Shown here: in pieces, positions 23,680 to 54,364 of the stretch | Position numbering within the stretch: the stretch's first letter is position 1 | Layout: each line of letters opens with the position of its first letter | Assembly (NCBI GenBank): GCA_964199315.1 | Contig: OZ116699.1 | Location: 12,586,001-12,650,000 of the forward strand | Length of the DNA stretch: 64,000 nt | DNA from: Orbicella franksi | Lineage: Eukaryota | Direction of reading: 5' to 3' | Program-made: the position numbers and the translations under genes | The notes under the pieces: generated by a model | Told to the model about the DNA's origin: nothing | The model's database searches: none | Seen by the model: the letters and a program-made list of their open reading frames with translations, nothing else

Positions 23680-24890
23680 ATGTTCGTAATGTCGCCGTTG
23701 TTATTTCTCCTCCTTAACCTGACCGGAGTGATGATGTTCAGGTTGAAGAGGAATGACGAGGTCGAGACTGCTGAAGACCCCAAGCGCCCCAATTATGTTT
23801 TGTTACCCAAGTTGAAGAATGGCGAGAACGAGATTCCTGAAAACTTCAAGCGCTCCATTTATAATGGTTTGGTCTCCAAGTTGAAGAATGATGAGACCGA
23901 GGAACCTGAAGAGCCTGAGCCCACCAAGAATACCAAGGCTTTGGGCCGCCCTGGTTTGTAATTTGTTTGTTTGTTTGTGCTTACTCTACAACATGTTAGT
24001 TTTTACGTTTACAAAGTGAAAATGTCTGTATCTGAAAACTTGAACACGGAGAACCAATCAAGTGTTTTTTCCCTCTCATTGACGGAAGGGATAGCGCCCC
24101 GACTGATATATTGTGGTTTTAAAATAAGTAACAAGGGAAATTGAAAAAGCGAAGAACTATCAGATAAAATAATGACTAAATTTTAACAGAATGGCAATTT
24201 TGATTTCTTGACATCCAGTCGCAAAATCAAATTTGATGAACTGTAAACCACGTCCATCCTTGAAATCCTGTGCTTCTTCCTCAAAACACTCGTTCTATTT
24301 TACTTTTTAGAATCTTTTGATCCAATTTAGTTGTGTATTTGGTTATATTTGGCGATATAATATGGAAATTAGGAAAGGAAACTTTCAATAATCTGAATAA
24401 TCAGCAGCAACACTGTCCCTGTCTTAAGGGCAGCGTCACTGTTCATTGTCTTGAGGGTAATCAGTGAAGATAGGTAACATAGTATGAAGGTACAGTGTCA
24501 ACTTTTTCGTACACGCTTGAATACACTATATAAAGGCAGTTTTAAAATAGATTTCATGGCCCGGACTGGGTTTGTCGTCTTACTCGGCTACACGTCATCA
24601 CTTTCTCACACAACGTCGAATTTGAGTCGTCTTATGTTAAAAGTAGTGACAGCGTGAACCTGTTTTAGCATTGCTATTACGTTTGTTAATCATATTGACT
24701 GTTCAAACTGACTTCTTTTTCAGAGGGTAGAGCTCCTGGTGATTGTATCGCTTGTTTCCTGATAGAATGTGGCTTCCCAGCCTTTGGATGCTTAGGTGCC
24801 GGTCCTGCATACTTAGGCTGTCTGACAGCAGCCTGTGGCGGTGGTATATTGGCAACCGTATGCTTGGCAGATTGCTTTCTTCCTATTTAG
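23680..24890 (+). CDS. Cys-rich prepropeptide gene, copy 2, 146 aa; coding exons 23680-23953 and 24724-24890
   Basis: Acceptor at 23654 precedes the ATG. Donor CCTG|gtttgt (phase 1) and acceptor ttctttttcag|AG give ...KALGRP-EGR-APGDCIACFLIECGFPAFGCLGAGPAYLGCLTAACGGGILATVCLADCFLPI*. Splice sites and phase are conserved in all four copies. AATAAA at 25105 is followed by a GT-rich tract. Confidence 0.85.
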
Positions 24891-25437
24891 GTCATGCTCT
24901 CAGCCAGTGCAGTCAAGAATGGATACTAGTAATTGTAATTATTAGATATCCAAACGGACCTTATTAACAATGGTCATTTCAATAAACTGTAAACCGCTTT
25001 GCTGATTTGTTGTTGTTGTTGTTGTTTTTTATTAAATCGAGGATGCGACTTATATTGTAATTGTTAACCTAACCATAATCTTAAGGACCTCTCAGGGTCT
25101 GCTGAATAAATAAACATGGCTGACAGCATAAACAGAGTTGTTGTCGTTGATAGTTGTGCTAGCGTCGAATTATGGAAAAAGAAAAAAATATAAGGCAATG
25201 CTGCGGATTCTGCATGCGAATATAATTTCACCTTTTTTTACCCGGAAAAATACTTTTGGGTAGCAACTCTTCTTTTGCAAGCCAAGTGATAATACCTTTA
25301 TTTGGCGCGTTTGCTAACAACTGTCACGCACTTAGTAAAATTCAGCCTTAAAAAAAAGACATCACAACAAGGCTCCAGGGAATAAACCCACATAATTCCT
25401 GAGGTCTATTCCCCAGAACCTCGTAATGATGTCTTTT

Positions 25438-26006
25438 ATGAAGACATGATTGATCATCGCAGTTATATAAACAACTTTAGCAGTTGTGAAACTAAAGCCT
25501 GAAAAAAGATCAGACCAAAACGGGATTCGAACCCATGACCTCTGCGATACCGCTGCAGTGCTCTACCAACTGAGCCATCAAGCCAACTGAGAGCTGATCG
25601 TGTTGTGAGTTCGTTATATACTCCGTTTAGGTCTGATCTTTTTTCAGGCTTTAATTTCACAACTGCTAAAGTTGTATATATAAGGGCGATGATCAATCAT
25701 GTCTTCATATCTTTCTCCGCAGTTCAAATGTATGATCTTTCATGTATTTACTTGCATTCTTCACCATCTACTGGCATATAACGAACTCACGACATGATCA
25801 GCTCCCAGTTGGCTTGATAGCTCAGATGGTAGAGCACTGCACCGGTATCGCAAAGGTCATGGGTTCGAATCCCGTTTAGGTCTGATATTTTTTCAGGCTT
25901 TAATTTCACAACTGCTAAAGTTGTTTATATAACTGCGATGATCAATCGTGTCTTCATATCTTTCTCCGCAGTTCAAATATATGATCTTTCATGTATTCAC
26001 TTGCAG
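25438..26006 (+). mobile_element. tRNA-derived SINE dimer with 5' inversion
   Basis: tRNA-like head TAGCTCAGATGG...GGTTCGAATCCC at ~25810-25880, with an inverted head at ~25510-25590. 11-bp TSD TGATGTCTTTT at 25427 and 26007. Empty site near 44598. Confidence 0.85.
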
Positions 26007-26080
26007 TGATGTCTTTTGTTTAATGCTGAATTTTAAAACATCGAAATTGGTCTATTGGACCAGTTCGCAAGCCTGCTTAA

Positions 26081-51118: not shown

Positions 51119-51270
51119 CTAACCTAAGCATTGTTAAGGCTAACCTGAGCACTATTCATGCTAACCGGCGCGCTATGCGGACTAACCATAGCGCTATTTG
51201 GGCTAACCGAAATGTCATTTAGGATAACCGAAGTGCAATTTAGGCTACTCCTTCCCTGCGGGCTATAAAG
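51119..51270 (+). promoter_or_regulatory. 21-bp-periodic CTAACC array plus TATAAAG, upstream of copy 4
   Basis: Hexamers at 51119, 51140, 51161, 51182, 51203, 51224, 51245. TATAAAG at 51264. Confidence 0.4.
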
Positions 51271-53167
51271 GGTTTCAACAAACACACAAGTACGGTACAT
51301 GTAACTAATATCCGAAAGTAGCGACAAGAAAAGGCTGCTAACTCAGGCACCCTGATTTATAAGTCAGATGTGTCTATGGGTCAAGAGTCATGAGATGATA
51401 AATCAATAAGTCACCAGTCAATTTGCCTTCCAGTTAGCCTGATTAGCTCTCCAGTAAGCCTAAATAGCAATTCGGTTAGCCTACTCTAGTCATCTTCTAG
51501 TCCCTACACTCTTTGCTTGTATCATTGTTGCTATATTAGATTGCGGCCTTGTTTTCGTTTAAGAGTTTTCTAACGTCCTAAAGAGGTGAAAGCTTAGAAA
51601 TATTGGGTAACTAGACAAGAAAAAAATGAGTAAGGGATCCAAAATTTTATCAGACGCTCATAAGAATGTCAATTTTGATTTTGTTATGTCTTGTCACAAA
51701 ATCTAGCTTGATGAACTGTAGTCCACTTCAATCCTTGTAATCCTGAACTTATATGTATGCCCCAAAATACTTGTTGTTTTTTGCTCTTTAAAATCTTTTT
51801 ATCCAATTCATTTGTATATTTGGTTACATTTGGCAATATAATAGGAAATTTGGAAAGAGAACTTTCGACACTGTCACACACCAGTTGACGATATCAGTAA
51901 GGTTTGAAAACCGCTCTAAAGGAAATAATAAACTCTCTACTTGTAATTGATGAGTTATGTAAGTACTTGACGAGAAGGCAAGCATTTGGAAGTTAAAGCG
52001 TAATCAAGTGATATTACTTTATATTGAATGCTAGCTTAAAATAATATTGTAAAGGTATATTGAACATTGGCTTAAAAACAGTGGAAGAACATGAATATTC
52101 AGTTTTTTCCTTGAAATATGGTGGAAAACTGACTTGTGAATCGAATGAAAATTAGCGATGAATATCAAGAACGTCCGTGAAACATTTCACGAATTATTTG
52201 TGTAGACGTGCAAACTGTTTAAAATATTGAGGAAACATAAATGTTTAAAGTCTTCTCCTTGTTAGTAAGCTATTTATTAATTCAAAAAATTAAAACCTGC
52301 TGGTGACTTGAGAGAAGCGGTAACTTACAAAAATTTACAATTTAGCAAGATTTTACTCCACCAAGGCGAGAGCGTTCGGTTAAATATGAACTCTTAGGTC
52401 TCTTTTTTTAGAGCCGAAAAGCAGAAACTAAACAAACCGCTGGAGAGAAGAATAGGTTTTTACTCTGTCCTTTAAAATGAATATTTGGTTTGCGCGGTCG
52501 TGTTAACGGGGTGTATGTATAAGAGATTACACATTGAGATTACAAAATGTTAGCGTTGGCCGCCTTGAAAACAGTGTGGTTTCTTATAACAAAATGTATT
52601 GGCGTTTCACTGGGACAAAAACGAAGTGGTTCCTAAGTAGTGGTTTCATTGTAGTGGATGTATCATTGTTAGTATTGTCGGATTCATAATGTTAGTAGTT
52701 TAGGCGTAATCCTTGTAACTGATATAAGTATCGTATTTTAGGTCATGTAAGTTTAATTAATTTTTAACATGAAAGAAAGTTTCTTGTAAGGAGTGTTGTT
52801 TTAGTATTGTAGTACAAAAAAGTAAGGTTTCTGGTTATTTTTAAATCATGAGCATAACAACTAAGATGCGCAAAGTTTATAAGCTGTTGAAAAGAATTCC
52901 CCATCGTTATTTCAGACCAAAAACTCAAGTTGCCTTTGAGACAGTTTCGGAGGCTTGTTGCTAAAAGAAGAAGAAGAAAAAAAAAAAAAAAAACTGGATA
53001 AAAAAGTAGAAGAAATGTTGACAACGGCATTTTGTCTTTGTTTACGACGAAAAGTTAGAAATTAACCCCTTACTGTCGGCTGCTTATCTCATTTAATCCA
53101 CTTTCCTCGACTAACTGAGGAAATTCACGTTATTCCCTTGCAGAAAAAAAGCAAAAACGACGACGTC

Positions 53168-54364
53168 ATGTTCGTAAGATCGGCGTTGTTATTTCTTCTC
53201 CTTAACCTGACCGGAGTGATGATGTTCAGGCTGAAGAAGAATGACGAGATCGAGACTTCTGAAGACCCCAAGCGCCCCAATTATGGTTTGCTTCCCAAGT
53301 TGAAGAATGGCGAGAACGAGATTCCTGAAAACTTCAAGCGCTCCATTTATAATGGTTTGGTCTCCAAGTTGAAGAATGACGAGACTGAGGAACCTGAAGA
53401 GCCTGAGCCAACCAAGAATACCAAGGCTTTGGGTCGCCCAGGTTTGTAATTTGTTTGTTTGTTCGTCCGTACTCTACAACATGTTAGGTTATAAGTTTAG
53501 AAAGTGAAAATGTTTGTATCTTACAAACTTGAACACGGAAAACCAAGGAAGTTTTTTTACCTCTCATTAATAAAACGGACAGGGTCCCGACTGATATATT
53601 GTGTTTTAATACGTATGGCCAGGAGCTTGCAAGAGAAATGGAAAATCAACTAAACAGATAAATAATGACTAAATTTTACCAGAATGGCAGGTTTGATTTC
53701 TTGACATCCTGTCGCAAAACTAAATTTGATGAACCGTAATCCACCTCCATCCTCGAAATCGTGGGCTTCTTACTCGTTCTATTTTGCTTTTTGGAATCTT
53801 TTGATCCAATTTATTTGTGTATTTGGTTACATTTGGGGATATAATATGGAAATTAGGAAAGAGACCTTAAGCAGCGACAACGGTCCGTCTTAACGGCAGC
53901 GACACTGTCCACTATCTACTGTCTTGAGGGTAATCAGTCAAGATAGGTAACACAGTATGAACATACAGTATGAACCTTTTTCGCACACGCTTCAATACAC
54001 CACAAAAAGGCAGTTTTAAAATAGATTTTATGGCCCGGACTGGGTTTGTCGTCTTGCTCGGCTACAAGTCATCATCCTCCCACACAACGTCGAATTTGAG
54101 TCGTCTTCTGTTTAAAGCACTGACAGCGTGAACCTGTTTTAGAATTGTTAATACGTTTGTTAATCATATTGACTGTTCAAACTGACTTCTTTTTCAGAGG
54201 GTAGAGCTCCTGGTGATTGCATTGCTTGTTTCCTGATAGAATGTGGCTTCCCAGCCTTTGGATGCTTAGGTGCCGGTCCTGCATACTTAGGCTGTCTGAC
54301 AGCAGCCTGTGGCGGTGGTATATTGGCAACCGTATGCTTGGCAGATTGCTTTCTTCCTATTTAG
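53168..54364 (+). CDS. Cys-rich prepropeptide gene, copy 4, 146 aa; coding exons 53168-53441 and 54198-54364
   Basis: Same exon structure and the same mature peptide. Acceptors at 53143 and 54197, donor at 53442, AATAAA at 54588. Confidence 0.85.

Follow-up and report, generated by a model that had tools for sequence, protein, structure and literature searches.

How can a small cysteine-rich peptide stay identical in three neighbouring genes whose introns and flanks have drifted apart, and what might such a peptide do? The question is raised by a 64,000-nt stretch of the Orbicella franksi genome (GenBank assembly GCA_964199315.1, contig OZ116699.1, positions 12,586,001 to 12,650,000 of the forward strand), hereafter referred to as the window. 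It carries an array of four intact genes in tandem on one strand: one of type B (copy 1) and three of type A (copies 2–4) whose mature product is identical. An earlier reading, made from the letters alone (below, the sequence-only reading), had singled out the last coding exon of copies 2–4 and proposed an amplification for dosage, kept identical by purifying selection or gene conversion. That proposal is supported by the absence of nonsynonymous divergence (dN = 0) over codons 41–146, by the synonymous divergence (dS) of exon 1 and by counts of silent sites.

The duplicated genes and their last coding exon

The window has a G+C content of 39% and contains no N. Self-blastn of the window delineated three duplicated units of ~9 kb with pairwise identities of 84–91%, and self-comparison placed a fourth, older copy (copy 1) near 8900–13745. 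The coding portion of the copy 2 unit is confined to its final 1.2 kb. Gene models reconstructed from the sequence give each of copies 2–4 a 441-nt coding sequence divided between two coding exons and encoding a 146-aa precursor; the intron is ~760–790 nt long with GT-AG borders, a GTTTGT donor, a TTTCAG acceptor and conserved phase 1, and the final exon is 167 nt long. The features of these copies are as follows (ORF, open reading frame).

16214..25437, + strand: duplicated unit of copy 2 (self-blastn, ~9 kb)
23680..23953, + strand: coding exon 1 of copy 2 (putative signal peptide and charged pro-region; 91 codons plus 1 base; donor GTTTGT)
23954..24723, + strand: intron of copy 2 (phase 1, GT-AG; divergence 7.3% from copy 3 and 13.5% from copy 4, plus indels)
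24724..24890, + strand: last coding exon of copy 2 (codon-completing AG, G-R, 52-aa peptide with 8 Cys, stop)
36562..44611, + strand: duplicated unit of copy 3 (self-blastn)
42801..43074, + strand: coding exon 1 of copy 3 (ORF and splice reconstruction)
43867..44033, + strand: last coding exon of copy 3 (same sequence as the copy 4 exon)
45925..54642, + strand: duplicated unit of copy 4 (self-blastn)
53168..53441, + strand: coding exon 1 of copy 4 (ORF and splice reconstruction)
54198..54364, + strand: last coding exon of copy 4 (blastn of the exon)

By blastn, the last coding exon of copy 2 recurs at the positions listed for copies 3 and 4, with two mismatches between copy 2 and either other copy and none between copies 3 and 4. 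As the sequence-only reading had reported, and as blastn and translation confirmed, both differences (TGT/TGC and ATC/ATT) are synonymous and private to copy 2. The outgroup loci L005 and L003, homologues described below, carry TGC and ATT, and both changes are therefore derived on the copy 2 branch. The exon product of 54 aa is the same in copies 2, 3 and 4. Its composition was likewise as claimed: the 52-aa peptide that follows G-R (24732–24887, + strand) comprises 8 Cys, 9 Gly, 9 Ala and 3 acidic residues (Asp or Glu) with no Lys, Arg or His, which gives a net charge of −3 and a grand average of hydropathy (GRAVY) of 1.40. Kyte-Doolittle averages over 19-residue windows reach 1.5–1.9 across precursor residues 97–146, and the cysteines are spaced C-x2-C-x4-C-x6-C-x9-C-x4-C-x8-C-x3-C, with no two of them adjacent.

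The surroundings of this exon have diverged considerably. Intron substitutions number 56/770 between copies 2 and 3, 98/726 between copies 2 and 4 and 99/748 between copies 3 and 4, with 22–74 gap columns, compared with 2/167, 2/167 and 0/167 in exon 2 (Fisher P = 1e-3, 2e-7 and 1e-9, respectively). The contrast between a retained exon and diverged introns and flanks thus holds once counted, at 7–13.5% plus indels in the intron. In the accompanying dN/dS comparison, exon-2 dN is zero and exon-1 dS is 0.084, 0.165 and 0.154 among copies 2–4, which matches intron divergence, so that exon 1 records the age of the duplicates. Amino-acid differences among the three copies occupy eight positions, all within residues 4–40; the changes in the signal peptide and pro-region that had been described earlier are real, but they are confined to this segment and the pro-region is invariant from residue 41 onward. 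Within codons 1–40 the proportions of nonsynonymous (pN) and synonymous (pS) differences are about equal, whereas codons 41–91 show 2–7 silent differences and no amino-acid difference, and residues 41–146 are the same in all three copies (dN = 0 over 106 codons). Because introns and exon-1 silent sites have diverged by 7–16% while dN in codons 41–146 is zero, the distal pro-region and the cysteine domain are under strong purifying selection. Purifying selection on a single product of three genes is selection for dosage, and we regard it as highly probable that this is a real gene family under such selection.

Could the copies instead be mis-assembled haplotigs, which the sequence-only reading had itself named as a possible source of the identity, or decaying pseudogenes? 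No transcript or annotated protein was found among the databases searched, which would fit such an origin, but we consider it extremely improbable. The copies lie in tandem on a single sequence free of N, they are unequally spaced (~19.1 kb between copies 2 and 3 and ~10.3 kb between copies 3 and 4) and their flanks are 9–16% divergent. With many indels and differing spacer lengths, the overall divergence of flanks and introns (7–16%) is far above the allelic level. In addition, the ATG, splice sites, frame and stop are kept in every copy, no amino-acid change is seen across the 106 codons mentioned above, and intact orthologous genes occur in several other assemblies.

In each precursor a hydrophobic N-terminus of ~20 residues, taken from its composition to be a signal peptide, is followed by a highly charged pro-region, G-R and the cysteine domain. 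Conservation alone suggests that copies 2–4 are transcribed, spliced and processed, and an AG acceptor located 25 nt 5′ of the ATG and kept in all four copies suggests an undetected 5′ non-coding exon. The pro-region is built on a tandem repeat:

23751..23901, + strand: pro-region tandem repeat of copy 2, 69 nt (23 codons), 2.2 units (Tandem Repeats Finder; blastn self-matches at a 69-nt offset)

Each unit closes with a KR or ER site, and the unit number varies from 2 to 5 across relatives, with 3–5 units in the homologous ORFs P0002 and P0001. In copies 2–4 the repeats carry silent changes only, which indicates that the pro-region is constrained in its own right; these repeats may yield linear peptides. 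Separately, exon 1 of copy 2 (23680–23800) carries five private amino-acid changes within residues 4–40, including R4M and A6P. The first of these removes the sole basic residue ahead of the hydrophobic core of the signal peptide, and relaxed constraint or weaker secretion of copy 2 is a possibility.

Purifying selection with or without gene conversion

The invariant tract exceeds the coding exon, reaching from 23 nt within the intron to ~90 nt beyond the stop. Two elements are involved, a conserved 3′ untranslated region (UTR) and a long run of identity between copies 3 and 4.

24891..25010, + strand: 3′ UTR of copy 2, conserved in types A, B and C
44034–44155, 54365–54485 and 13301–13420, + strand: 3′ UTRs of copies 3, 4 and 1, same conserved element
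43844..44124, + strand: candidate gene-conversion tract, a 281-nt run equal to 54175–54455 in copy 4

An alignment of 13 sequences shows that ~110–130 nt beyond the stop are kept in every family member of types A, B and C, across assemblies and including loci L002–L009. Family-wide, this UTR is conserved more strongly than the coding exon and diverges by 3–12% where introns diverge by 7–27%; its identity is for that reason not usable as evidence of conversion. We read it as a short UTR that probably carries a poly(A) signal (AATAAA or AATATA-like) followed by a GU-rich downstream element. An Rfam scan returned no match in the UTR and only three tRNA-like hits in the window.

The silent sites of the exon itself are more telling. 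Between copies 3 and 4, exon 2 shows 0/41 synonymous changes against 6–7/32 in codons 41–91 (Fisher P = 0.005); when silent sites of the intron and adjacent exon 1 are taken as reference, ~5–6 silent differences are expected and none is found (P ~0.002–0.005). The 281-nt run covers the last 23 nt of the intron, exon 2 and 91 nt of the UTR, where one of the first 108 positions differs between these two copies. No other stretch of identity in the ~6.3 kb of unit that could be aligned reaches more than a quarter of its length; the run shared by copy 2 with either other copy measures 217 nt. A GENECONV analysis, which the sequence-only reading had proposed, was carried out as a GENECONV-style permutation on sites polymorphic among eight family members, because a plain three-sequence count is powerless with ~3 informative sites in the tract. 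It gave 64 consecutive identical sites for copies 3 and 4 (P = 0.0002) and 51 for copies 2 and 4 (P = 0.0006). Relative rates point in the same direction: in the intron tree copy 4 lies nearly as far from copies 2 and 3 as from L005, and despite this similar distance L005 has six exon-2 differences where copy 4 has none. Exon-2 synonymous sites do vary in other family comparisons (dS 0.08–0.29). On these grounds we lean towards at least one gene-conversion event, with a tract of 281 nt or more, that made exon 2 and its borders uniform in copies 3 and 4.

Purifying selection alone, with few silent sites left unchanged by chance, is a conceivable but less likely account of the same data. Exon-2 dS between copy 2 and copies 3 or 4 is 0.05, not significantly below the intron or exon-1 rate, and the two changes involved are simple and derived on one branch, so that no tree conflict is required. 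Family-wide constraint explains the identity of the 3′ UTR, and codons 41–91 are also invariant in amino acids yet have not lost their silent divergence. Copy 2 needs no conversion, and selection alone explains its data. What selection alone accommodates poorly is the pair of copies 3 and 4, with its missing silent differences, its run of identity extending into both intron and UTR and its departure from the rate seen in L005. Three points nevertheless weigh against conversion: the silent sites behind the signal are few, the permutation cannot wholly tell conversion apart from purifying selection specific to this isoform, and copy 2 lacks any excess of silent-site identity.

A second pair resembling the one in the window was found in a single sample, between L004 (10946–11107) and L007 (8041–8202), with 0/167 differences in exon 2, 3.9% in the intron and 1.8% in exon 1. 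These two loci may be paralogues or alleles.

A wider family in corals and the rest of the window

The first gene of the array belongs to a different type.

11198..11318, + strand: coding exon 1 of copy 1 (type B), same signal peptide, short acidic pro-region
13110..13300, + strand: last coding exon of copy 1, G-R and a 60-aa peptide with C-terminal Gly

The copy 1 peptide consists of two copies of a C-x4-C-x8-C-x3-C module with ~70% identity between the halves, and its C-terminal Gly is a possible amidation signal. An orthologue of copy 1 is present in L005 (15437–15252, minus strand), where it adjoins a type A gene; the split between copy 1 and copies 2–4 is therefore old. The intron of copy 1 measures 1.8 kb rather than ~0.77 kb because of the nested inverted repeats that it contains (12148–12826; 224-nt arms, 91% complementary), which look like an insertion of the miniature inverted-repeat transposable element type.

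Homologous exon-1 ORFs (P0001–P0013) were recovered from coral-derived contigs. Their sources are a "coral metagenome" (ERZ922785, run SRR1822516), the assemblies ERZ25878340 and ERZ26858540, whose records do not state the host, and Logan and European Nucleotide Archive read assemblies; BioProject PRJNA269585 comprises black-band-disease metagenomes from several coral hosts. The loci to which these ORFs belong, together with one scan of Joint Genome Institute metagenome contigs, yielded type A relatives with 63–94% identity in L005, L003, L004/L007, L002, L006 and L008, and acidic members of a third type, C, on the minus strand of L002, in L009 and in P0017, the last being the sole addition from an alignment query. 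The two-exon structure and an open frame with eight invariant cysteines are present in at least nine homologous loci. Among the 9–10 sequences aligned, the eight cysteines, the G-R start (G-K in one relative) and a few other residues are invariant.

Family members span net charges of −7 to +2 and GRAVY values of 0.46 to 1.55. Type C members have a GRAVY of 0.46–0.59 and a net charge of −2 to −7 on the shared cysteine framework, while L008 has a net charge of +2 and a GRAVY of 1.06. The earlier description of the peptide as unlike cationic antimicrobial peptides (AMPs) therefore fits this isoform but does not extend to the family, which also includes strongly acidic members and, in L008, a cationic one; the lack of basic residues is a trait of the isoform and its close orthologues.

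Between types, the pattern of change differs from that seen among copies 2–4. For example, L005 and L002, which lie on the same contig, differ by 4.4% in exon 1, 15.3% in the intron, 17.4% in exon 2 and 6.2% in the UTR. Overall, paralogue types differ by ~4–16% in the pre-pro exon compared with 14–17% in the mature exon; mature-exon pN/pS is 0.8–1.6, and mature pN is 2–4.5 times that of the pre-pro part. Pairwise omega ranges from 0.6 to 2.3, and the contrast between exon 2 and exon 1 is significant in a single comparison (L003–L004, P = 0.018). In a related assembly, the contig that holds L002 and L005 ~45 kb apart (ctg58260) has a cluster that spans at least 65 kb, with genes on both strands and no fewer than four different peptide types.

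A phmmer search of the mature exon against 1.84 billion representative proteins gave two real matches, both genomic ORFs (P0015 and P0016); a further match, P0014, was rejected as a spurious repeat protein. No homologue was detected with the mature exon alone as query under the length window applied, and no ATG-initiated ORF covers the exon. Peptide motif strings had no match in the full-text papers searched. Taken together, this appears to be a coral-restricted, unannotated prepropeptide family that is detectable only as stray ORFs in contigs.

Several other features of the window were recorded. The spacer between copies 2 and 3 is ~8.5 kb longer than that between copies 3 and 4 and contains (at ~25440–36500) three long ORFs that have no Pfam match (30679–31167, 31557–32345 and 32598–33896 (−)); a zf-RVT fragment (45445–45918, minus strand) lies directly upstream of the copy 4 unit. 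These ORFs and the fragment are probably transposon insertions. Sequences resembling tRNA-Thr(GGU) are located at 10849–10922 (−), 25512–25584 (−) and 25811–25883 (+). The two situated 3′ of copy 2 are in inverted orientation with tails ~95% identical, and elements like them directly follow the genes in L003, L004, L006 and L007. Such sequences are probably short interspersed nuclear elements of tRNA origin rather than tRNA genes. At the start of the window, an ORF at 386–1015 (−) encodes 209 aa with a CAP/cysteine-rich secretory protein domain (Pfam E = 9.5e-17), and the adjoining ORF at 1183–3318 (−) encodes 711 aa with no Pfam match.

Predicted fold, possible function and known systems

The sequence-only reading had suggested a disulfide-locked helical bundle. 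AlphaFold2 models built on the 9–10-sequence alignments are all-helical for both types tested: type A comprises helices 4–15 and 17–51 with a predicted local distance difference test (pLDDT) of 70.7, and type C helices 2–25, 30–37, 40–50 and 52–59 with a pLDDT of 69.0. The models thus support helical content, at modest confidence. They lend no support to a specific compact bundle or to a disulfide pairing, and Foldseek against the PDB yielded no pheromone-like, saposin-like or other analogue. The C-x4-C-x8(6)-C-x3-C module, which is duplicated in type B, occupies a pair of short helices with a turn of two residues between them in the type C model; the basic unit may therefore be a helical hairpin with two disulfides. 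Profile searches added no relative: hmmscan against Pfam at E ≤ 10 assigned no family to the mature exon of types A and C, and a PDB profile search gave no match at E < 1, with only noise at E > 1 (syncytin, CALHM). For copy 1, Toxin_2 was rejected as a coincidence of cysteine spacing (19.4 bits against a cut-off of 25.1).

What would such a peptide do? The chain of explanation that we put forward, and taken as a whole narrowly favour, is a secreted, membrane-active effector derived from a charged prepropeptide. From architecture and composition, the precursor would enter the secretory pathway, and its eight cysteines would pair as four disulfides within a domain made of helices only. Until a cut is made after the conserved G-R, the charged pro-region would chaperone or silence the greasy domain and keep it soluble or inactive. 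Once freed, the peptide would partition into lipid membranes or hydrophobic interfaces and serve as an effector in defence, as a venom-like agent or in the control of microbes. The dose would be supplied by three genes, as argued for Nv1 in Nematostella (PMC9842752), and across paralogue types the same scaffold would be quickly re-surfaced in hydrophobic, cationic and acidic versions, as in toxin and immune-effector families. That the cysteine framework recurs in type C relatives, which are acidic (GRAVY ~0.5), speaks for a secreted, soluble scaffold.

Several observations weigh against this chain. Among the 5.8 billion or 1.84 billion database proteins searched there is no spliced or annotated family protein. 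Cleavage after G-R would take place at neither a canonical dibasic nor a furin site. The two models are of modest confidence (pLDDT ~70, predicted template modelling score 0.41–0.44), and the type A model is one long helix (17–51) rather than a compact bundle. Foldseek against the PDB gave no match below E = 8 for either model, although modest models make this fold test weak. Membrane activity of the 52-aa peptide, taken as a step of its own, is tentative, being drawn from composition alone.

The invariance of the mature product, set beside its rapid change between paralogue types, would also suit a signalling ligand (a pheromone, a settlement or an allorecognition cue) that stays invariant within the species to match its receptor and diverges between paralogues and species. 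The small, disulfide-rich and predicted helical domain agrees with this, as do the prohormone-like precursor with its repeats and KR sites and the C-terminal Gly of type B, a classical amidation signal. We nonetheless find a ligand unlikely: with a GRAVY of 1.40 and a charge made up of only three acidic residues, the peptide would be extreme for a diffusible waterborne ligand, a dosage of three genes is more in keeping with an effector made in quantity than with a signal, and a Foldseek search of the PDB revealed no similarity to Euplotes pheromones or other ligands, albeit with weak models.

Hydropathy raises a different alternative, namely that the C-terminal 52 residues are never released and form a membrane helical hairpin or anchor with the charged repeats facing the lumen or the outside. 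Segments ~97–118 and 120–146 exceed the usual Kyte-Doolittle transmembrane threshold, the type A model is dominated by a 35-residue helix and the cleavage site is non-canonical. The main argument to the contrary comes from the paralogues, since type C is too polar for a bilayer (GRAVY and charge as given above) and the cationic L008 variant is less hydrophobic than type A. Moreover, the eight invariant cysteines and the equally invariant G-R/K boundary mark a domain that is processed and folded by disulfides, and Glu and Asp are buried in both segments. An anchor of this kind is accordingly quite improbable. A glycosylphosphatidylinositol signal in the C-terminal tail was rejected as well, as two invariant cysteines lie inside it and type C tails are polar.

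A structural role as a disulfide cross-linker, comparable to the minicollagen cysteine-rich domain (CRD) and located for instance in the wall of nematocysts, in mucus or in the organic matrix of the skeleton, is very unlikely. The richness of the peptide in Cys, Gly, Ala and Pro would suit such a role, as would a KR-bearing propeptide like that of nematocyst proteins and a high dosage, which is plausible for a structural protein. The minicollagen CRD has the pattern CX3CX3CX3CX3CC and flanks collagen or polyproline stretches. The cysteine spacing of our peptide does not fit this pattern, the precursor has no Gly-X-Y or other collagen-like repeat, and fast divergence of non-Cys residues between paralogues is atypical of structural modules.

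We return to the secreted effector, for which a bolder version can be formulated: a new fold class of cnidarian effectors with a four-disulfide helical scaffold whose surface can be strongly acidic, cationic or almost purely hydrophobic, a polyprotein-like precursor with 23-aa repeats released as second, linear peptides, and a hydrophobic anionic isoform that inserts into membranes or acts in the lipid phase. We hold this version to be doubtful; if true, its hydrophobic anionic isoform would work by a different mechanism from the cationic AMPs and channel toxins that corals are known to have. More generally, stony corals have yielded very few known effector peptides (SCRiPs and three ShK-type AMPs in the literature consulted), and this family is apparently missing from protein annotations. 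Should the hydrophobic anionic isoform prove membrane-active, the known chemistry of coral defence and microbiome control would be widened. The locus also offers a natural experiment, with paralogues of similar intron age showing either zero or ~17% change in the same exon, in which selection, conversion and diversification can be separated on a small scaffold. The conserved 3′ UTR and the constrained repeat pro-region point to features of regulation and processing.

Among helical folds, the saposin-like proteins with acanthaporin, the alpha-hairpinins and the thionin/crambin core resemble the predicted helices and the hairpin-like module by analogy only; the strict CX3C...CX3C motif is absent, and there was no Pfam, PDB-sequence or Foldseek match. 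Crambin and SP-B do have a hydrophobic surface, as the present peptide does. Euplotes pheromones are three-helix disulfide-locked bundles of 38–63 residues, and neither Foldseek nor the sequence search gave a match to any PDB entry, although the modest confidence of our models leaves room for a similar topology. The sequence-only reading had claimed no homology to them, and none emerged.

Among known coral peptides, SCRiPs are likewise coral-restricted, secreted, small and multi-copy with eight cysteines (PMC2652719, PMC10892658). Their framework C(6)C(4-6)C(5-7)C(5-6)C(6)CCC, which closes with three adjacent cysteines (PMC10892658), is not followed here, as no two cysteines of our peptide stand side by side, and the present precursor is much longer. 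[quoted passage not shown] No sequence match links the two families. Similarly, the coral ShK AMPs damicornin, AmAMP1 and digitiferin (PMC12496222) are secreted as prepropeptides in which an anionic or charged pro-region precedes a C-terminal domain rich in Cys. In contrast, the present family has no ShK or other Pfam domain, and its isoform is anionic and hydrophobic rather than cationic. Digitiferin was considered as a relative and rejected as an ShK-domain protein.

A close parallel for the array itself is Nv1 of Nematostella vectensis, a cnidarian tandem array with one identical, secreted, cysteine-rich product and a copy number read as dosage. Most Nv1 copies are ~99% similar at the mRNA level, and the locus is a documented cnidarian case of dosage through identical toxin genes in tandem (PMC9842752). 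Concerted evolution has been proposed for Nv1, and there too it is disputed whether the copies were homogenised or are the outcome of recent duplication and birth-death evolution. Here, however, identity is confined to exon 2 and the 3′ UTR (~220–280 nt) within units that are 84–91% identical, which indicates that the duplicates are old. There is no similarity to the NaTx sequence or framework, and the peptide is hydrophobic and acidic rather than a basic channel toxin. With conotoxin-like families the present genes share a signal/pro exon conserved above the mature exon between types, invariant cysteines, a mature exon of its own and tandem clusters. They differ in the 8-Cys framework, the all-helical prediction and a pro-region that is a constrained repeat array, and within the window the pattern is reversed, with the mature part frozen and the signal variable. 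Tandem cysteine-rich prepropeptide families are already known; what is unusual here is a hydrophobic anionic isoform kept identical in three old duplicates.

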